Shown in pieces: positions 830 to 36,816 of a stretch of DNA of 64,000 nucleotides. The stretch lies in NCBI GenBank assembly GCA_010909165.1, contig MU008203.1, positions 124,001 to 188,000 on the forward strand, written 5' to 3'. A program made the position numbers and the translations under genes. The notes beneath the pieces are model-generated. The model made no database searches, had not been told where the DNA came from, and worked only from the letters and a program-made list of their open reading frames with translations. Each line of letters opens with the position of its first letter. Positions within the stretch are counted from its first letter, which is position 1. The stretch comes from Anthoceros angustus (Eukaryota > Plantae > Anthocerotophyta).

Positions 830-2322
830 ATGGTACTGAAAACCGCCAGATCGGTTTCCCTCCCGCGGGCCGATGCATTGTTTCGGAAAAGGTGTCATCC
901 CAGCAAGAAGCTGTGCACGGGCTTGAGGCGGGACAGCTACCCGGCCAGCCTTGCGGGAGTTTCCTCCACTCCGTGCCTGGCTGAGCGGCCGCTCTCGAAT
1001 TTCTCCGTGGACATTGGGAGCCTTGAGTCCCTTGATGTCGACATTTTGAAGACTGTGTCTTCCCGTCTGTCGGTTCCGGACCTCTGCGTGCTTGCGCAGG
1101 TGAGGCTTGATCCAGGCTCGTGGTTGGAAGGTTTCGGCCTGTGTTTTGTTTGTGCGTGAGAGTGTCGTCGAGCGTGCTCTCCGGCGTTGAGATTGCGCTC
1201 CTCATCTTTTCCAGCTCCCGCTGTCTGGGCAGGGCTGCTGTGGGATAGCCAGGCAGCTGCACAGTTGTGTTGCAGGTCCTCGCTTTCTGTGTGGCTGAGA
1301 GCGGTTTTGACTGCGCTGAGCTTTAAATGCTGAGGCCCTCCTTGTTTGTGCTGCCAGGTAAACAAGAACTACCACGAGGTCTTCTCCTCTGATGAGATTT
1401 GGCAGCACCACTCATCTATCAATGGAATCTGCAAGACTGAAGACGAGAAAAGCTGGAAGTGGAACTATATGGCCGCCACGACTGGTATCCTCAGTTGCAG
1501 ACCTCGCGTTGGCAATCTAAACTTCTATGGAGACATCGTGATCCTTGACCCGTAAGTGATCTGCAAAATTTTGTTCCTTGGTTTTGAAATTGAAGTCATT
1601 TCATCATGCATTCAAGAACCAACGCCCTGGCGTTCTGGCGTCTGATTGCAGCCTGCGGATCTTCTTTACGAATAACGCGAGCCGCCAAGCAGAGTTTCAG
1701 GAAACTCTCAACAGACATGGGCTGACAGATCTGGTTGTGACCTATCGTGGAGTCAGCTGTGCTATTTTCCCCACCACCTATGGCCTCGACGAAACGGCGT
1801 TTGAGGTATTCAGAGGGACTCGTGAAGGAAATGCGAGTGCCGACATCACGAATTCAGGCAGAGTTGCCGTGATGCCATCTGAGCTGTTTACTATGCTCAA
1901 GGAGGAAAACTCCGATCCGTTTCTGGATCATGGAGTTCGAGTGAGTGGGGTGAACGGCCAGATCTTCAGCAGCCATGATGGAGACTTCTATATCCGCCAC
2001 CCCGATCATTCAAGTGGGATTCCCGTGGAGATAGCAGAAGGAGTGGTTGACCATGCTGATGTTCTTTGCACAACAGGTAAACTCCGAACCATCCCGCTGC
2101 CTACCCGTTTTCCTCTCTTCCTTACTTCCGAAGTTCTTGTGCACTATATCTTACCGGGCCTTGTCCTTTGCAGGAGGAAGCTGGACTTTAGACATGGATG
2201 AAGACAGTGACGATGAAGATTGTACACTGCTAAGTGAAGGCAGACTAATGGAGGTCATCCGGGACATGTCAGACTCAGATTTCGAGGACTTCGATGAAAC
2301 GACAAGAGAAGGTGACATGTGA
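830..2322 (+). CDS. F-box protein with an unassigned C-terminal domain; exons ~830-1099, 1358-1551, 1652-2076, 2174-2322 (start may lie further upstream)
   Basis: GT-AG splicing keeps frame at all three introns and reconstitutes an F-box across intron 1: SLESLDVDILKTVSSRLSVPDLCVLAQ|VNKNYHEVFSSDEIWQ. Acidic C-terminal tail. Confidence 0.7.
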
Positions 2323-2796
2323 TGATCTGTTCCAGAACGGCAGGGCCGGTTAAACTGTTGGGTTAGTTCCTCGTGGGTTCAATTCTCAGAGGAAGGTGTA
2401 CACTACAGAATGGAATCCGCATGTCCTTAAATCTCGACATCATTCCGTTAGGTTGGGCAGGCAGTTCCAGGCGGATATATGCATATATATTGGGTGTCAG
2501 CTCTATAGGATGCAAGCCTTCTCTAACACGAAGCTTGCTCGGCGGGTGGGATGAGCTGCACTCGGGAGTCTCATTATACAACTAGGTTTTGTCCAAATTT
2601 TTGGCGCAGATTAGGGATGGTCTGAGGGGCCATTAGATACATTCAATAGTGTAAGGCCAATTGATTTCTTTTCCTGTATAGTACAAGCTCAGCTACAATT
2701 GTTGGCTGTCACAGCTTGTTCTTCATTGTAAGTAACACGGTTCTTTGAATCACTTCTACCTATTAGTAATTCCGTCTGGGCCTAGTGTCTGTACTC

Positions 2797-5484
2797 TCAG
2801 TCCACAAGTTCCACCAGCTGTGAGTTGAGTGACTTCACCATTTTATAAATATCTCCTGTTTGCCAATGCCTACAGTCTCCTACCAGAAACATATTAACCT
2901 GCTGATCGTGCTCGATCCAGCTTTGTCCAGGCACCTTCCGCACACCCGCCTTTCGTCTTAATTCATCTACCTCTGCCGCAGAGTCCCACATGCCAGCAAG
3001 GGCATAGATATTTGACATAAGCAAGTAAGATGCACAGTCAGTGGGTTCTAGATGGATGGATTGATTAAAAGCACGCCTTCCTAACTCTACATTGCCGTGT
3101 TTCTGGCAAGCACCAAGCAGCGCAGACCACACGGCCAAGTCAGGCAGCATTGGCATTTCTGCGATCAGCTCTTCTGCCTTGTCCAAGTGTCCAGCACGTC
3201 CTAGGTTGTCGACCACAGCAGCGTAGTGCAGAACATCTGGAGTGATTCCATGAAGTATAGACATGGACGCGAAGTACTGCAGCCCTTCTTCTACCATGCC
3301 AGCATGACTACACGCAGACAGGAGTGACAGGAATGTGACTCCATCTGGCTTCACGCCTGCCTCTGCCATTTGTTCAAAGCACTGAATGCTCATGTGAGGC
3401 TCACCTTGCTGGGCATAACCAGAAATCAGTGCCGTCCATGAGCACACATCATGCTGCAACAACGAGTCAAAAGCTTTCTGAGCTTCCACCATGCTCCCAC
3501 ACTTGCTGTAGGTACGAGTAAGGGAGGTCAAAACACTCAAACTTGAATCATAACCATGAGCCGAAACATCATGATGAATCTGACCACAAATATCCAGTGC
3601 CCCTGTATTACTGCAGGCTTGCAGAACACACAAAAATGTGGCTTCATTTGGTTTCACCCCTTCTTTTTGCATTTGGGCGTACAGCTCCAGAGCCTTCTCG
3701 GATTGTTCATGATGGACATATCCTGCAAGTATTGCATTCCACAACACCACATTTCGCTGGGAGGTTGTGTCAAAGACATGCCGCGCATCAGCAATGCTTC
3801 CGCACTTTGAATACATGTGGACAAGACTGCTATTAACATACACGTCTGAACCGTAACCCCCACAAACAGCTTCCGCATGTAACATCCTCCCCTTTTCCAG
3901 GAGCTCCACCTTAAGGAACTGTCCACCCACAAGTGTGCTGTCTTCCTTAAATCCTAGGCTACTACATGCTGTAAATAGACGGACGAAGGTCCGATTGTCT
4001 GGTCTAATGCCTTCCTGTTGCATCTGGGCAAAAAGCTGCAGAGCTTGCTCTCCTTGCTCCTGCTCAGCATAACCTGCAATCATCGCATTCCATGAGACCA
4101 CAGTACGTGCGGACAGCATGTCAAATACATGCCGTGCATCCAACAAGCTCCCACATTTTGCATACATGTAGATCAGAGAGCTTCCGACATACTTATCAGA
4201 GGTGTAACCCAATTCAGACGCTCCAGCATGTACTCCTTTCACCTTCACCAGCGAATTCAGTTTGACAAATTGGCCATCTAGAGGAACGCCTTCCTCCCCC
4301 TCTGCGATGCTGCCACATGCTTTCAGCAGACTAACAAAAGTCCGGTCATTTGGGCTGACACCTTCCTGTTGCATTAGGGAATAGGCAAGCAACGCCCTCT
4401 CTCCTTCTCTCAGCTGCGCATAGCCTGCAATCATTGCAGTCCATGCTACCACGTCCTGCAGGGTCAATGCTTCAAACACTTGTTCTGCATCCTTTCTGCT
4501 TCCACATTTTGCATAGGTGTGAACAAGAGTGTTCCCAACAAAGGCATCCGATTCAAATCCTCTTTGAACGACTTCCGCGTGCATCGCCTTAACCTTTCGC
4601 AATAATTCCTCTTTGAGGAATGTTTTCTTTGAAAGACTGTCTTCTCCATCTGCAAGACTTCCCAGTGCCTTAAGCACACTGACATATGTCCTCTCAGTGG
4701 GACTGATGCCTTCCTCTCGCATTCGGTCATACAGCTGCAGAGCCGTCTCTCCTTGCCCCTGCTCCCCATATCCCTCTATCATTGCACTCCAAGTCACTGC
4801 ATCACGCTCGGACATCGAATCAAATACCTGCCTTGCATCGATGACGCTTCCACACTTCGCATACATGTCGACAAGAGTAGTGCCAACAAACAAATCAGGC
4901 TTGCACATGTACTCAACAACATCAGCATGAATCCTTCGACCCTCCTCCAGGTCCAACAAGCTGCAACAAGATTTCAGTACGCTGAGCAGAGTTTGCTTTG
5001 TGGGGTGGACACCTTCCTCTCGCATTCTCTTGTACATTTTCAGAGCTTCCCTCCTTCGACCTCCCTTGACGTACCCCGAAATAACAGCATTCCAGGAACA
5101 TACAGTCCGCTGAGATAATCTGTGAAACACCTGCAAAGCATCTGCAAACATCCCGCACTTTATCAACATGCTGACCACAGATTCTCCCAACATTCTGTTT
5201 GTCTCCAGCCCATTTCTCGCTAGATGAGCATAAAGGCGCTTGCCCTCAGCCAGGGACTTCTTTCTGGTGCATGCCTGCACCAAGCAGCCATACATCTGCA
5301 CTGAAGGTTGGTCCACTCGAAGCAATTCATCCAAGGCCCTCGACACCTGTCCTGCCGCACAAAGGCCCTGTATTTGACAAGCACCATGGACATCGCGTCG
5401 TCCTATGCCATCATGTTCCCAATAGTCGTATCCAATTGGCTGTCCTACGAGAGGAGAGGGAGGAAAGGGAATGGGCGTAGCCAT
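2797..5484 (-). CDS. PLS-class PPR protein, E subgroup (E1-E2-PG box, no DYW); probable organellar RNA-editing specificity factor, 895 aa, intronless
   Basis: Repeated VDMYAKCGS..ARQVFD / VVAWTAMIAGY motifs, E1/E2 (LHYAAVVDNLGRAG, VWSALLGACQKHG) and PG box KVPGQSWIEHDQQVNMFLVGD. Ends before HSE/CxxC. Confidence 0.95.
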   Translation of the reverse strand: MATPIPFPPSPLVGQPIGYDYWEHDGIGRRDVHGACQIQGLCAAGQVSRALDELLRVDQPSVQMYGCLVQACTRKKSLAEGKRLYAHLARNGLETNRMLGESVVSMLIKCGMFADALQVFHRLSQRTVCSWNAVISGYVKGGRRREALKMYKRMREEGVHPTKQTLLSVLKSCCSLLDLEEGRRIHADVVEYMCKPDLFVGTTLVDMYAKCGSVIDARQVFDSMSERDAVTWSAMIEGYGEQGQGETALQLYDRMREEGISPTERTYVSVLKALGSLADGEDSLSKKTFLKEELLRKVKAMHAEVVQRGFESDAFVGNTLVHTYAKCGSRKDAEQVFEALTLQDVVAWTAMIAGYAQLREGERALLAYSLMQQEGVSPNDRTFVSLLKACGSIAEGEEGVPLDGQFVKLNSLVKVKGVHAGASELGYTSDKYVGSSLIYMYAKCGSLLDARHVFDMLSARTVVSWNAMIAGYAEQEQGEQALQLFAQMQQEGIRPDNRTFVRLFTACSSLGFKEDSTLVGGQFLKVELLEKGRMLHAEAVCGGYGSDVYVNSSLVHMYSKCGSIADARHVFDTTSQRNVVLWNAILAGYVHHEQSEKALELYAQMQKEGVKPNEATFLCVLQACSNTGALDICGQIHHDVSAHGYDSSLSVLTSLTRTYSKCGSMVEAQKAFDSLLQHDVCSWTALISGYAQQGEPHMSIQCFEQMAEAGVKPDGVTFLSLLSACSHAGMVEEGLQYFASMSILHGITPDVLHYAAVVDNLGRAGHLDKAEELIAEMPMLPDLAVWSALLGACQKHGNVELGRRAFNQSIHLEPTDCASYLLMSNIYALAGMWDSAAEVDELRRKAGVRKVPGQSWIEHDQQVNMFLVGDCRHWQTGDIYKMVKSLNSQLVELVD

Positions 5485-30629: not shown

Positions 30630-31095
30630 ATGGCGTCACTCACCGCTGCCTCCGCTTCTGTTGCCGCCTCCGCCAGCTCTTTGGCCGGGGTATGCATCGG
30701 CAAGGCTACATCCGCCAATGTCGTCTCCGTGAAGGTAAGTACAATGCGCCGCGCAATTGCTTGTATCTGATCCCGCTTTTCTTTCGATGCTCTAAGCTGA
30801 CGTCCACACCAACTGCTACGTAGGTGAATCAATTTGCTAATAACCGATCTGCTGGTGACCTGTGTGAACGCAGATGGCACCTGTGAGGTGCTCGGCTGCG
30901 GAGCAGAAGGCCGAAAGTGAGGGCATGCAGAGGAGGAAGATGGTTACCCTCGCTGCCGCTGGCGTGTTGGCAGCTCTGGCGTCCACCACGGGAGCTGCTA
31001 ATGCCGAAGAGCCTAAGCCCGGAACTAAGGAAGCCTTGAAGAAGTACGCCAACATCTGCGTTGCCCAGCCTACTGCCTCGATCTGCCACGGCTAG
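30630..31095 (+). CDS. PSBT: Photosystem II 5 kDa protein (nuclear PsbTn); exons 30630-30734 and 30874-31095
   Basis: Ser/Ala-rich transit peptide, RRKM twin-arginine-like thylakoid signal ending AGAANA, mature EEPKPGTKEALKKYANICVAQPTASICHG. Confidence 0.93.
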
Positions 31096-31652
31096 AGCTT
31101 CATGCTTGCTAGTTCAAGAGATGCTGTTGACAGTTCCCTTCTGTATACGTAGTTCCCTTCTGTATTCTAGCTCTGGATTGCCAATGGTGACCGTTCAGGC
31201 ACGATTGTGAATCTACTTCCCTCCTGCGGAAATCAATCCTCTGTAATCACATATCATGGAATTTCTTGAATGCTGGTTGATCCTCGAACTGTGACATTGG
31301 TGACAAAGTTTCCGAGAAAGTAAATCATGCAGCAAGCTTGTCACTCCCCTCGCGTCAACATCTTCTCATGTTGGACAACAACCTACTCTGCCAAACGCAT
31401 GATCCGGTCTTTTGGGGGAAGGCCTTGTTCTTGTGGTCCGGCACTCAGAATACCGATAATTGCCTCCAGTCGAAGGTGGAAAAAAATGACAAGTCCGTAT
31501 GTTATTTACTCACCTTGCACACATAGCCCAATGAATGTACGCTGTCAACACTCTAAGTATCATCGACGGTGTCCAGTACTCAGAGATCCCACATGGTCAC
31601 AAAGTCTGAACAGCGAAAGAGGATGAATAACATTACATGTGTTCATGTACAT

Positions 31653-34183
31653 TCAGGTGGGGAGAGGAATCGGCAATTCGCTCTGGAAGCTCTCAAGCCA
31701 TACGTATAGGGCAAGGACGAAAAGAAAAGCCTGGATGGTCAGACGCCATCCGAAATTCCACGCCCTATTCTGGCAAGTGATTATCTCTCCCATCTCCTGG
31801 GAGATTTCCCGGGATGATTCCAGTTGCTCGACTTGCTTTCTCAGCGCAAGAACCTTTGATTCTAAAGCACATCTTAATTTCTCACCTTCCCTTAACTGGT
31901 CCCCGAGCAACTGCTTCTGTTCTTCTAAAAGCTTATTTCTATCCGCTCCACTGTGCCTCCACTCGGATATGAGACCTTCTTGGTTGCAGCCTTGGGAGGA
32001 GGTAAGACTGGCTTCAATTTCAAGACCTACCTGGTGCTGGACCTCAAGTTTAGAATCCATGAGTGCTTGCAAATCCTTCCACTTCTTCTCAAAGGAGTCA
32101 CTCTGATAACTCAGCTCCTTCAACTTCATGGCCTGCTCGGCACATAAATCACTCAGTCGCTCCGACTGCTGCTCCGCAGCCAGTCTGTTTTTCTCTTCCT
32201 GTTGCAAATTTTCCTGAAACCAATCCAAAGTTTGCCGCATCTCATTTACTTGATCGGCGTACAAAGCCAGCTGGCTACCAGGCTCTTGGGTTCTGTCCAC
32301 AGTACTCTCTCGAGGATGCTCCTTCCTCCTGTTTGCAGCTGAAAACTGCAGGCGGCCAAAGTCAGACATCATCGCAGTCATTTTGTCATCCTCGCGAGTG
32401 TGACGGCTACTGCAACCTTTCTCCTCCTCTTCATCATGAGTAGTTAGGGAACATGTAGCATCCTCTTCTTCTGCCAGACACATCAGGCATCTCAGAAATG
32501 AACAAGCGAAAAATTCACAAGGAGCTATACGCAATCTCCTCCACGCAATGAAAGCATACCTTCTTGATCTTCAGTCTCAGAGAGACAAGCATTCAGCAAT
32601 GGACTGTTGTAACCTCCGGTGTTTCTGCCTGGACTTCCCGCTTCAGATTCCATGGCGAGGTCTTCTGCCTCACTGCTGTCATCCTCATCGTCAGTTGTCA
32701 GAGCAAACGATTCTGAAAGGCTTGCAGACTCCACCTCGTCATCATCGCTGTCAGTGTCCTCAACATCAACAACACTGATGTCGACAGGCTCACACACAAA
32801 CTCGTCATCAATAAACACAGCGTCTTCCTCTTCCTCATCCTCTACCAATTTCACATTTTCCACAGAGACCTCCTCACAGGGTACAGTATCCGTGTTTTCT
32901 GTAATAGAGCTTTTAGAGCAGGAGCTGACGAGCATGTCACTGGACTCAACATGCTCGAAGTCAATCTTCTTGACAACTGAGCCGACATCCTCCCTGCCCA
33001 CAGAATAATTCATAATTACGCCACCTGCTGCAGCACCGCTATCCTGCTCCCAGTCAAATGACAGTTCTCCCTGACCGGGGGTTGGCTCGCAGCTTTCCTC
33101 TGTTCCTTCGGAAAGATCCCTTACATTCAAAACGGACAACGGACTGGACTCCAGCGCTGAGGAAGTACGGACAGAACTAGTATCGGTCCCCAGCATCGAA
33201 TCACCCAACGAAATCTGAGAAGGACTGCACAAGCTACCCTCAACAGCATCAACCTGAAGGGACGCTAAATCCTCTTTAGACAGCTGAGGCAAAGACGTGG
33301 CCACCTCAACCCGCACATCCCTCCTGCGAGGGCCCCTTTCCAGCTTCTTGGTTTCCCCGTGAAATCGCTCCGTTTCAGCGAGCACCACCATACTTCTCTG
33401 CCGCTTGCGAGATTTAGGGTTTGTTTGAGGACTCCCTGCTGGGGTCACTTGGACTGCCTCTCGAATCTTCCTAGCCACCCTAGGAAAACGGACACATCCA
33501 GCGGCCAAGTCCTTGTTCAAAACCTCTGTATCACTGTTACAGGCAACCTTAGACTGGCCTCCCCCTTCGCTAAAATACGGAATCCCTTTCCCGGTTATGG
33601 AAATCCTATTCCTGGTTATGGAAGTTCTATTTCTTTCCAAACTAGCATGCCGGGACAGCAGAGCCGCATTGGAGGCCCGTGCCATGCCATCAAAGTTTTT
33701 GATAAGTTTTCCCAGTCTCTCCATATCTTTTCCCAGCGATTCCAGCTCCTGCTGCACTGCCTCCCGTTGTCTAACAGATTCCAACACTTCCTCATTCCCA
33801 ACAACCACATCACTCCCCACCACTCCATCCCCTCTGCCGTCCAATATCTGCTTATAAAGCGCCCGCTCTTTCTCCAGATGTTCCTCCAGCCTCTGGTCTT
33901 TCTCCACCTGATCCGACATCTCAGTCTTGATAAGCTCCTGCACCTGAATCAGCTCCGTCTCGAATTTCTGCAGCTCAGAATAGCCGTCGTGTCGCAGCCC
34001 CGATACCACGCACAGCAATTCTGCTTCCCGCCGGTTGAGTAGTACGAGACGCGTAGTCACATTCTTCCACTCCGACTTCAATCTCTCACGCTCTTTACGG
34101 TGTTTTTTAACTGCATCCAGTGCACTTTGAGTGCGGTGAAACAAGAACGCGGAGTCGCCTTCGCCAGGTCTCCATTCTGACAT
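31653..34183 (-). CDS. Coiled-coil, acidic, tail-anchored membrane protein ending ...SELPIPLPT (candidate KASH protein); intron 32471-32559
   Basis: ORFs 32525-34210 and 31653-32534 join in frame through an 89-bp GT-AG intron; heptad-rich N- and C-terminal segments; hydrophobic stretch LTIQAFLFVLALYVWL followed by a 13-aa tail. Confidence 0.8.
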
Positions 34184-35104
34184 CACCCGAGCTCCTGCTG
34201 CAGCCCGCACTGAGGGTGAGCATAATGACCAGACACGGGATCATGCACCACAACCATGCCCCATGCACGTCCAGGCGAGAGAGTGATCTAGCCAGCTCCC
34301 AAACCCCGGATCCCCACCACAACAGAGCAAGCAGCCACCCCCTAACAATGCACCTCGGAGACCAAGACCCGAACCGAACGCCAAGAATGCCTGCCGCAGC
34401 TCAAGAACCTCTCCAATACCATCACACTAACCAGCAACGTTACACACGACCACAAACTCTCCATGGCTGGGAACGGACAGACCCCATACCTCCTGTTCCT
34501 GTCCGTTCCCCTCTCTACTCCGCACTCGTCAGCCCGTTAACGTTCTTCCTACCGCTCAACGCGCATTCTCTGCAATCCGGCCTGCGGAAGATGTTTCAGG
34601 AGAGTACAATGCGCCTGTGGCCGTGTCGCCAAAACCCGCCACTGCCGCCGTGGAATGGCCTGCAGCAGCCCATCTGGACTGCGCACAATGGTCCCGGCGC
34701 TGTGCGCATTGCCTCCTCCGCACCAAAATTATCGAGAATATCACCCAAAAATAAAAGCGACCAAAAGTGATGTGATTTTGTGAAGGCAACGTAAGTGTCA
34801 ACAAATCTACTCCATACCTACATAAAAGCCATGTTAGATAGACATGGCAGGTATGTATGTACGTATCTTCGGGTATGTAATGTTTGTCTGGTGAAAGCAT
34901 GGATGATCGATATCGATGAGCAACACCGATGCATGCCATCTCACTAAAAAACACCGATGCATGGGAGCTGAAGGCGATTGCGTCAACAAGGCTCACTAAA
35001 ATCAGCCAGGCTGATTTTGTGGGAATTACGAAGCCTTACTGAGATCCGGGCTTTCATTTACGAGAAAGGGGAGACCATCTGTGGGGAGACTGGTCAGGCT
35101 TCCA

Positions 35105-36816
35105 ATGGAGGACAGGTACTTCAGGCTCCTCTCCTGAATGATGGCTAGCTTTGGGCGGCCGTTCTTTCTGCTCGGCTTGAAGCTGATCCGTGTTGAGACA
35201 TGTTCTGTGTAGATTCAACACTCCCCACACGGCTGCAATCGAGGTGGATGTTTTAGGGCACAGTCTTCACATTGTTCAGGTTGGGAACACAAGTTTGTCG
35301 GAGTTGTGGCTGCTATGTATGGCAGAATTGGTTGTAATTTTGTGGAGGGAACGCAGGATCCTAATTCTAAGCACCTGGGTACGACAGTGTGGGATTCTTC
35401 AGTGGTGTTCGTCAAGTTTCTGGTGTGTGGGCCACCCTAGTCATGGTTGCAGACATCCGTGGTAGCTGGGATTGATGAGGCTCTTGATGCTGTGCAGGAG
35501 AAGAACAGCAGGAAGGGGGAGTTCAGTCGTGCCAACATGACAGGGAAGAGAGTAATCGAACTTGGTGCTGGGTGTGGCCTAGCGGGACTTGGTGAGAAGG
35601 CTCTATCATAAGAGGAATACTATGCCACATGTGCAAAAGCTTCGGCCTGTGCAACTGAGAGACAAGAACCTCGATTGCTGTCAGGCATGGCTCTGCTAGG
35701 ATGCGACGTGGTGGTCACAGACCAGGTGGATGTACTACCTCTTCTTCTCAGAAACAGCGAGCGGAATTTGGCTCGAGCCAAGTACACGGCTTCTGAAAGT
35801 TCCTTCTCAGGTCTATCAACTGCAAACCGTCAAGCTCATGGCACTAGTTCCATAAGTGCACATTTGCATCTTCAGGACTCATCAGGAATTTTAGTTATCT
35901 GTGCAGGGCCTGTTGGATCGGTGGAAGTAGCAGAGCTGGATTGGGGAAACGAGCTTCAGATCGCTGCTGTCAACCCCCCATTCGACTTCATCATTGGCAC
36001 CGACGTTGTGAGAACACCTGTCTAATAAGCCTCTTCTACTAGCAGCAGCCGCAACCATGTATGTCACTAGTCTGCAGGAAGTTGTTCCTTAAAGATGTTT
36101 CAGGGCAGGCGGTACCGAAGGCAATGCTAACTGATCTCTGAATGCACACAGGTATACAAAGAACACTTGCTAGAACCTCTTTTCAAGACAGTCGATTTGC
36201 TATCGGGACCGAAAACCAAAGTCATTGTAAGCTTGATTCTTTTCGAAGAAAGTGATCTGATTGCTATATGTTCGTAGCTCATCTCTCACTCTTTCCTGGT
36301 TCCTCGCAGCTGGCTTACGAATTTCGTGCAAGTGACGTGAAAGAGAAGCTGGACAGACTTCTGAAGGAGAGGTTTTCTGTGAAGAAAGTCCAACGATCTA
36401 AGGTGAAACCTACTAAAATGCTCGTGATTGTTGTAGCCTGTAAAACCAATGCAATGCATACTTTCTGTGCAGATGGACAGCAAATATCAACATGCCAATA
36501 TCGAGCTGTACATCCTCGTCCCGCTGCCTGAGCAGGTAATCTATAAACTACTTTCGAAGGATGAGTATTCCGTAAAGTCACTGCATACTTTGCAGCATTA
36601 CGAACTTACCCACCTTTGTAGCAGGAAGTTGTAGCCGGGAGGTCAGCAGCTGCTTCTCTTCAAGCTGATTCTTGCTGTCCTATTGAATCGGACTCTGACG
36701 AACCTGTTACAGCACGTGGAATTGGGAGCCAGTGGGAGTCTCGCAGGATGGGAGCTTCTGCTGCACGGCTGCTGGCCTGTATTGAGGTCCCAGCCACGGA
36801 CACAGCTCATGATTGA
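35105..36816 (+). CDS. SAM-dependent protein-lysine methyltransferase, METTL21/family 16 type, ~9 exons
   Basis: MEDR|FNTPHTAAIEVDVLGHSLHIVQ|DPNSKHLGTTVWDSSVVFVKFL|..GKRVIELGAGCGLAGL|GMALLGCDVVVTDQ..|LDWG..FDFIIGTDV|VYKEHLLEPL..|LAYEFRA. Confidence 0.9.

Follow-up and report, generated by a model that had tools for sequence, protein, structure and literature searches.

The plant KASH domain, as defined by Zhou et al. 2014 (PMC4050730), lies directly behind a transmembrane (TM) helix, is 9-40 amino acids (aa) long, forms the C-terminus of the protein, ends in [DTVAMPLIFY][VAPIL]PT and is kept in most members of a family. A screen of the Arabidopsis proteome for a TM helix followed by a 9-40-aa tail and xxPT gave only five new proteins, and four of these were confirmed as KASH proteins that depend on SUN; removing PLPT from SINE3 abolished both SUN1/2 binding and nuclear-envelope localization (PMC4050730). 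Plant KASH tails have since been described as 9-13 aa long and ending in (V/I)PT, with 9 aa in the WIP type and about 13 aa in the SINE type (PMC13200780, 2026). In the literature that we surveyed, nearly all known plant KASH proteins come from flowering plants; beyond the seed plants, the single family on record is SINE1/2, described from P. patens and Selaginella (PMC4050730), and the SINEs have been called the oldest plant KASH family (PMC13200780). Here, we describe a minus-strand gene of the hornwort Anthoceros angustus, found in a 64-kb stretch of contig MU008203.1 (the window; all gene coordinates are window positions), whose predicted product is a strong KASH candidate that matches no known family in our searches. 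The best reading of the sequence data, and one that we consider reasonably probable, is that it represents a new family, spread through the bryophytes, of outer-nuclear-membrane (KASH) proteins that bind SUN.

An earlier reading of the DNA letters (the original prediction) had proposed a lineage-specific plant KASH protein encoded by positions 31653-34183. Both ends of that coding region are right, but the frame between them is not continuous. The minus-strand open reading frames (ORFs) 34210..32525 and 32534..31653 lie in different frames with a ten-base overlap, and the reading frame is interrupted between them by an 89-nt GT-AG intron (32559..32471). The junction reads GAAG/GTATGC...TCTGGCAG/AAGAAG, and excision restores the frame via a split GAA codon. 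Contigs from four public runs (X1, X2, X6, and X14) were compared with window positions 30700-36400. These runs are transcriptomes, since at least six GT-AG introns have been removed from the contigs of the plus-strand neighbor gene. Run X1 has a contig of 2449 nt that matches the window without a difference, except that precisely the 89 intron nucleotides are missing. X2, X6, and X14 come from other, related organisms, with aligned pieces differing from the window at ~3-7% of positions, and their contigs also lack the corresponding intron through the same splice. The gene model and its transcription are confirmed; the gene has one exon in the 5′ untranslated region (UTR) and two coding exons, 34183..32560 and 32470..31653, as follows.

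34490..34694, minus strand: 5′ untranslated exon, upstream limit approximate; transcript contigs cover 34490-34664/34694, with a GT..AG joint from 34197 to 34490.
34198..34489, minus strand: 5′ UTR intron, 292 nt, GT-AG; joints skipping 292 or 295 nt in X2 and X6.
32560..34183, minus strand: coding exon 1, 541 codons plus the first base of the split Glu codon; ORF, translation and an X1 piece (32560-34196) without differences.
32471..32559, minus strand: intron, 89 nt, GT-AG, phase 1; joint from 32470 to 32560 in X1 and X2, corresponding joint in X6 and X14.
31653..32470, minus strand: coding exon 2, 271 codons plus stop; translation, and contigs colinear through the stop.

The gene product therefore has 541 + 1 + 271 = 813 aa. 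The ATG at 34183 is the start, because the 5′ exon has in-frame stops and no ATG past the last of them; a start codon further upstream is ruled out by the same in-frame stop. At the other end, the X2 and X14 contigs continue unspliced through the stop, to 31619 and 31568, respectively, so that the coding sequence ends here, and the 3′ UTR extends at least to 31568 (X14 contig). Splicing past this stop, which would have undone the original prediction, does not take place. An internal GT..AG (32040..31991 region) was considered as a further intron and ruled out, all transcript contigs being colinear there. Two minor variations were seen in the related organisms. NAGNAG acceptors 3 nt apart are used alternatively in the 5′ UTR intron (X2 and X6; window 34194-34197), and both runs carry an in-frame 9-nt insertion after 33818, in a Gly/Val-rich linker between N-terminal helices.

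All protein searches and structure predictions were run per exon, with exon 1 and exon 2 as separate queries, and hydrophobicity is given as the Kyte-Doolittle mean over 19 residues. At the C-terminus, the sequence ...NRAWN-FGWRLTIQAFLFVLALYVWL-ESFQSELPIPLPT-stop contains a 20-residue helix and, behind it, a 13-residue tail ending in PLPT. The two elements are placed as follows.

31695..31754, minus strand: single TM helix FGWRLTIQAFLFVLALYVWL, exon-2 residues 239-258 (whole-protein residues 781-800), at the Kyte-Doolittle maximum of 1.75.
31656..31694, minus strand: predicted lumenal KASH-type tail ESFQSELPIPLPT, 13 aa, with PLPT at 31656-31667 and the stop at 31653-31655.

Exon-2 residues ~239-261 (1.75) are the sole segment of the whole protein with a mean above 1.0, which confirms the single C-terminal TM helix of the original prediction along with its 13-aa tail ending in PLPT. 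Each part of the published definition has its counterpart here. A single helix directly precedes the tail, the 13 aa of the tail are followed at once by the stop, and PLPT fits the pattern of the last four residues; the place in a family is taken up below. In AlphaFold2 models, the last 7 residues are predicted to be non-helical, as expected of a peptide bound in extended form. This architecture seems to go beyond chance, because the screen of a whole proteome for it gave only five new proteins, of which four were true KASH proteins. The protein thus fits every sequence criterion of PMC4050730; its membrane topology, SUN binding, nuclear-envelope residence and cytoskeletal role are inferred.

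Because the claim of a new family rests on missing known relatives, exon 2 was used in an exhaustive phmmer search, which gave seven matches (P0001 to P0007). Further members came from a word search with the C-terminal region of the Marchantia paleacea protein and from a profile search with an alignment of eight C-terminal regions (A1). The relatives, in which all named proteins are annotated as hypothetical, are the following.

P0001, Logan assembly (second hornwort): 260 aa, 57% identity to exon 2, ends VPLPT.
P0002, Marchantia paleacea KAG6550473: 803 aa, E 4e-17 to exon 2, ends HIPT.
P0003, Calypogeia fissa CAM6106274: 1051 aa, E 4.5e-11 to exon 2, ends LIPT.
P0004, Riccia fluitans KAL2613570: 856 aa, E 5.5e-11 to exon 2, ends LIPT.
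P0005 and P0006, Logan fragments: 142 and 160 aa, E 1.5e-5 and 1.4e-4 to exon 2.
P0007, Selaginella moellendorffii XP_024536286.1: 856 aa, E 2.8e-4 to exon 2, no TM helix.
M. polymorpha MPTK1_7g09410 (Mp7g09410): 927 aa, word search, ends LIPT.
R. sorocarpa (P0011): 1008 aa, word search, ends LIPT.
P0012, liverwort-type fragment: profile search with A1, ends ...RVSVVPT.
P0008, moss-like, on a JGI contig: 781 aa, member of the P0006 cluster, ends LRPT.
L002, moss-like, the contig of P0005: last exon ends ...DPMRNSLLPT.

In the second hornwort, a 605-aa ORF directly upstream on the same contig (L001) aligns with exon 1 over its full length (37% identity, E 1e-60), and the two-exon gene is therefore shared. 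A word search with exon 1 returned nothing, although the liverwort orthologs fell within its length range, the N-terminal half being too divergent; at the conserved N-terminal motif, BLASTP aligned the M. polymorpha protein locally, with E 0.008. The N-terminal halves of the hornwort and liverwort proteins are nevertheless co-linear, with the motif ES..Q..V..E..SL..D..RL..L, an RKR patch plus short helix, and S..K(K/R)(I/L).F in the same order. Invariant columns of the first of these are E135, S136, Q139, V143, E146, S149, L150, D153, R156, L157, and L160. As judged from these alignments, the family is orthologous over its full length between hornworts and liverworts, and such co-linear relatives in both lineages indicate that it predates the hornwort-liverwort split. 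P0008 and the L002 contig were labeled moss-like, with a moss origin being probable; they are similar to each other and carry the family's mid-protein motif. The protein thus appears to belong to an old, unnamed and bryophyte-wide family with probable moss members. The original description of it as lineage-specific has to be given up in view of the full-length co-linear orthologs in the second hornwort and several liverworts and the similar C-termini on the two moss-like contigs.

The Selaginella protein, which has no C-terminal TM helix, shares only the first C-terminal coiled-coil module, residues 63-158 (hhalign probability 97.6%, E 3e-12, 96 columns), and reflects either a module shuffled onto another protein in vascular plants or a wrong gene model. 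The JGI contig of the moss-like member P0008, L003 (JGI 3300019258), is an intron-free 5-kb contig, probably a transcript, with ORFs 383-1522 and 2248-4593. It has approximately 10 tandem repeats of ~22 aa (..LREELG.QV.TLTLQLEEQ..) ahead of the conserved C-terminal block and, upstream in another frame, a 379-aa acidic ORF; expansion of these repeats has apparently made the rod longer in this lineage.

Conservation at the C-terminus was followed in a set of ten members (two hornworts, six liverwort sequences, and two moss-like contigs). Every one of them has a single hydrophobic helix (Kyte-Doolittle 1.4-2.1) 10-18 residues from the end, without a second hydrophobic segment, and a tail that ends in PT with the stop directly after, so that the terminal TM helix with its 10-18-aa tail is a family property. 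That orthologs should keep the terminal PT had been proposed as a check, and 10/10 members do. The remaining tail varies by lineage, with the endings PLPT, LIPT, HIPT, VVPT, LLPT, and LRPT:

Hornwort tails: ESFQSELPIPLPT; KNFHSEVAVPLPT.
Liverwort tails: SRVAEAIKGSLIPT; SRISEATKHSLIPT; SRVAEPLRDSLIPT; ...RVSVVPT.
Moss-like tails: SKFQDPMRNSLRPT; SSFTDPMRNSLLPT.

The pattern [DTVAMPLIFY][VAPIL]PT is matched by eight of the ten, HIPT and LRPT falling outside it, and the tail length of 13-14 aa was counted as within the range of plant KASH tails (9-13 aa, PMC13200780). Alignment A1 has 23 invariant columns, which include the membrane-proximal coiled-coil block, a Gln in the TM helix, one Ser near the start of the tail, and the final P and T. 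The best-conserved motif of the family lies in the C-terminal coiled coil, L(L/V)E.QK.LL..Q(L/M)(K/R)E.E(K/R)L...E..V..L, with Q184, K185, L188, Q191, E194, E196, L198, E203, V206, L209, and L216 invariant (exon-2 numbering). The Gln in the middle of the TM helix (Q246 of exon 2; window 31731-31733) is invariant in 8/8 aligned members, and could mediate packing of three KASH-chain helices beneath a SUN trimer. The exon-2 substitutions listed in close relatives include two in the tail, E259D and Q262P, and none in PIPLPT; taken together, the listed changes point to a fast-evolving protein with a constrained end.

A tail anchor of peroxisomes, or of the outer membrane of mitochondria or plastids, is another conceivable reading of the helix. 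Its hydrophobicity is only moderate and its residues include Arg and Gln, and such features can favor targets other than the endoplasmic reticulum (ER) in tail-anchored sorting. However, tail anchors of the plant mitochondrial and plastid outer membranes usually have basic C-terminal segments, whereas the hornwort tail ESFQSELPIPLPT is net acidic, with two Glu and no Lys or Arg. Such an anchor also gives no reason for the invariant terminal PT, and we regard it as very improbable.

A more serious alternative, unlikely though it is, places the protein among the generic tail-anchored coiled coils of the ER or Golgi, for instance as an ER scaffold or as a tether of the golgin-84/CASP kind; the terminal PT would then be kept for a purpose other than SUN binding. 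The outer nuclear membrane and the ER are continuous, and architecture cannot separate the two. In the ESM Atlas, the look-alikes of exon 2 are tail-anchored coiled coils of several compartments (CCDC136, SLMAP, golgin A5, and WIT2), all at ≤0.90, and those of the Marchantia C-terminus are scattered animal coiled-coil families with two of the ten best in one family; these are leads only and uninformative. On the other side, no Pfam match to Golgin_A5, CASP_C or another family was found, the only link to Golgin_A5/CASP_C being a look-alike at 0.89. Moreover, PT has stayed at the exact C-terminus in three bryophyte lineages whose tails otherwise differ, which is unexpected of a mere anchor, and the hornwort ending is identical to a validated SUN-binding ending (PMC4050730).

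The part of the protein ahead of the membrane consists of a ~190-aa N-terminal helical region, ~350 aa of disorder (first basic, then strongly acidic) and a ~200-aa C-terminal coiled coil, followed by the TM helix and tail. Its features are these.

33617..34162, minus strand: N-terminal helical (coiled-coil type) region, residues 8-189, from AlphaFold2 helices.
33704..33781, minus strand: conserved N-terminal motif ES..Q..(A)V..E..SL..D..RL..L, residues 135-160, from invariant columns and BLASTP.
33401..33409, minus strand: RKR basic patch, resembling a nuclear localization signal (NLS), residues 259-261, with R259, K260, and R261 invariant, then a short conserved helix, 262-282.
32561..33283, minus strand: disordered middle, Ser/Thr-rich and then strongly acidic, residues ~301-541, with a predicted local distance difference test (pLDDT) score <50 per 10-residue block, and charge.
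31755..32288, minus strand: C-terminal coiled coil, exon-2 residues 61-238, helices with pLDDT >90.

For exon 1, AlphaFold2 predicted long helices at 8-63, 71-118, and 127-189 and the short helix at 262-282, with the remainder disordered. Per 10-residue block, pLDDT of the N-terminal region was mostly 75-97 at 11-110, 86-88 at 141-160, and 46-68 elsewhere. For exon 2, modeled with the family alignment A1, helices 61-158 and 174-264 had pLDDT >90, the second continuing through the membrane segment. In the disordered part, residues ~151-300 are basic and the chain turns strongly acidic beyond residue 350, with a net charge of -5 to -22 per 50 residues across residues ~301-541 and of -32 over residues 451-541. 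The large coiled-coil and acidic protein of the original prediction is thereby borne out. Hornwort and liverwort members share, at similar positions of the disordered middle, a Trp with an acidic context: SFDWEQD in the window (~33038-33058), GYDWV in the second hornwort, and EEVGSWE/GSWG in liverworts. We take this Trp-acidic motif, speculatively, to resemble the animal W-acidic motifs that bind kinesin light chain.

Pfam searches with both exons (E up to 1) and with five relatives gave no family match, only sub-threshold coiled-coil noise; KIF9, SPATA1_C, Filament and similar sub-threshold matches were rejected as composition effects. The sequence profile search of the PDB returned generic coiled coils only (keratin, tropomyosin, geminin, and beta-PIX). 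Similarly, Foldseek with the exon-1 model gave helical hairpins only and nothing in the PDB at E ≤0.001; a spectrin-repeat-like three-helix unit, as in nesprins, had been considered for exon 1 and found no support in that search.

Among the known plant KASH families, no search and no Pfam scan linked the window protein to WIP, SINE, WIT or TIK, in agreement with the original prediction, which did not recognize it as WIP, SINE or TIK. The identical final PLPT behind a TM helix and short tail is found in SINE3 (At3g06600), which has been described as confined to Arabidopsis relatives and some dicots (PMC4050730). No sequence similarity to SINE3 was detected, and the window protein differs in its 813 aa with long coiled coils and in its bryophyte family. 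With SINE1/SINE2 and the maize MLKS, it shares a tail of ~13 aa with acidic residues. SINE1/SINE2 have N-terminal armadillo (ARM) repeats that associate with actin, whereas here there is no ARM match (Pfam, E up to 1) and long helices are followed by disorder. A TIR domain, the hallmark of TIK, was likewise without a Pfam match in the window protein.

The closest likeness in plan, and with it the possibility of a divergent bryophyte WIP ortholog acting with WIT-like proteins, RanGAP and myosin XI-i, concerns WIP1-3 of Arabidopsis and MLKP1-4 of maize. These are outer-nuclear-membrane adaptors to the cytoskeleton via WIT and myosin XI-i (PMC13200780; bioRxiv 10.1101/343939). In these proteins as in the window protein, a coiled coil of multimerizing type leads straight into the TM helix, and the short tail closes with a hydrophobic residue and PT; the basic patch of the window protein is NLS-like. 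WIP1, too, carries an NLS, and the VVPT ending of the liverwort-type fragment P0012 presumably matches that of AtWIP1. Against such descent, which we consider improbable, no angiosperm protein was recovered by the exhaustive phmmer search with exon 2, by the word search from the M. paleacea C-terminal region, or by the A1 profile search (proteins of 149-474 aa, 8000 candidates sharing most words). The distance from WIP is measured by these searches and by published descriptions. WIP tails have 9 aa, often Pro-first, and end in (V/I)PT (PMC13200780), whereas the tails here have 13-14 aa, begin with Glu, Lys or Ser and, in hornworts, end in LPT. In addition, WIPs are restricted to angiosperms, according to Poulet et al. 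2017 as cited in PMC13200780.

Two further groups share the design. WIT1/WIT2 are plant coiled-coil tail-anchored outer-nuclear-membrane proteins, and the WIT2 cluster was among the look-alikes at 0.89, below the reliable range, but neither the window protein nor four relatives match WIT1_2_N (PF26581) in Pfam. To our knowledge, WITs have no lumenal tail with a terminal PT, and it is the WIPs that bring them to the envelope. The animal KASH5 (CCDC155) and LRMP/KASH6, found by the same kind of architectural search (DORY; PMC4050730), also have a cytoplasmic coiled-coil rod, a single terminal TM helix and a short lumenal tail. Their tails, however, are of the type ending in PPPX, and there is no sequence relationship, so that the likeness is one of design and not of descent.

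If the hornwort protein is a KASH protein, its single C-terminal helix would be inserted post-translationally into the ER or outer nuclear membrane. The lumenal tail of 13 residues would dock, by its free C-terminal ...PLPT, in the KASH-binding groove of C-terminal SUN trimers in the inner membrane, and this docking would retain the protein at the nucleus. The ~780 cytoplasmic residues would form a multimerizing rod and spacer, in which the long acidic disordered linker connects the N-terminal helical domain to the coiled coil next to the membrane, and the conserved N-terminal motifs of the rod may recruit a cytoskeletal partner.

Several observations weigh against this reading. The motif can occur by chance, as in At3g47410, the false positive of the Arabidopsis screen (PMC4050730). 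Two endings are off the published pattern, since M. paleacea has H at -4 and the JGI moss-like contig has R at -3. The Arg and Gln in the TM helix also count here, as does its weak hydrophobicity in the second hornwort (1.41). Evolution is fast, the exon-2 substitutions listed in close relatives comprising 19 non-synonymous and 11 synonymous changes. Finally, some validated maize KASH proteins reach the nuclear envelope without the last four residues or the whole tail (bioRxiv 10.1101/343939), so the KASH motif is not always the determinant of localization. With these points taken into account, we still favor, as the likelier account of the sequence data, a separate unnamed family within the known functional class of KASH proteins.

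The candidate gene is flanked by two plus-strand genes. On one side, a small gene (window 30872-31333, ORF 30874-31095) is covered by transcript contigs of very high depth. It encodes a 73-aa protein with a lumen-type leader, which ends in ...KKYANICVAQPTASICHG and has in Pfam a weak match to the PsbQ leader only; it may resemble the nuclear-encoded photosystem II subunit PsbTn. On the other side, a divergently oriented gene (window ~34996-36400 and beyond), with its short GT-AG introns, has one exon that matches Pfam Methyltransf_16, a lysine methyltransferase.

A text search of the papers surveyed found none that mentions Mp7g09410, and for KASH with hornwort, liverwort or bryophyte it returned author-name matches only and no paper connecting them. 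In a preprint on moss SUN2, attachment of microtubule-organizing centers (MTOCs) to the nucleus was ascribed to 'unidentified KASH/WIP/WIT proteins'. Tentatively, and with rather low probability for the proposal as a whole, the present family could be the missing bryophyte coiled-coil KASH partner of C-terminal SUN proteins that links the nucleus to MTOCs or motors. It may even be the ancestral land-plant coiled-coil KASH behind the angiosperm WIPs, with the N-terminal helical and Trp-acidic motifs as docking sites for motors or adaptors. A conserved, transcribed and unnamed family with the full KASH signature is a concrete candidate for nuclear-envelope docking in bryophytes, for which the surveyed literature describes no coiled-coil protein of that kind. 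Since it has a member, Mp7g09410, in the genetically tractable Marchantia polymorpha, nuclear positioning, spore polarization and spermatid nuclear shaping become directly testable in plants with motile sperm, although a part in the shaping of sperm nuclei, as suggested in the original prediction, is purely speculative. If the KASH reading is true, the family would also tell whether coiled-coil KASH adaptors were already present in the first land plants.

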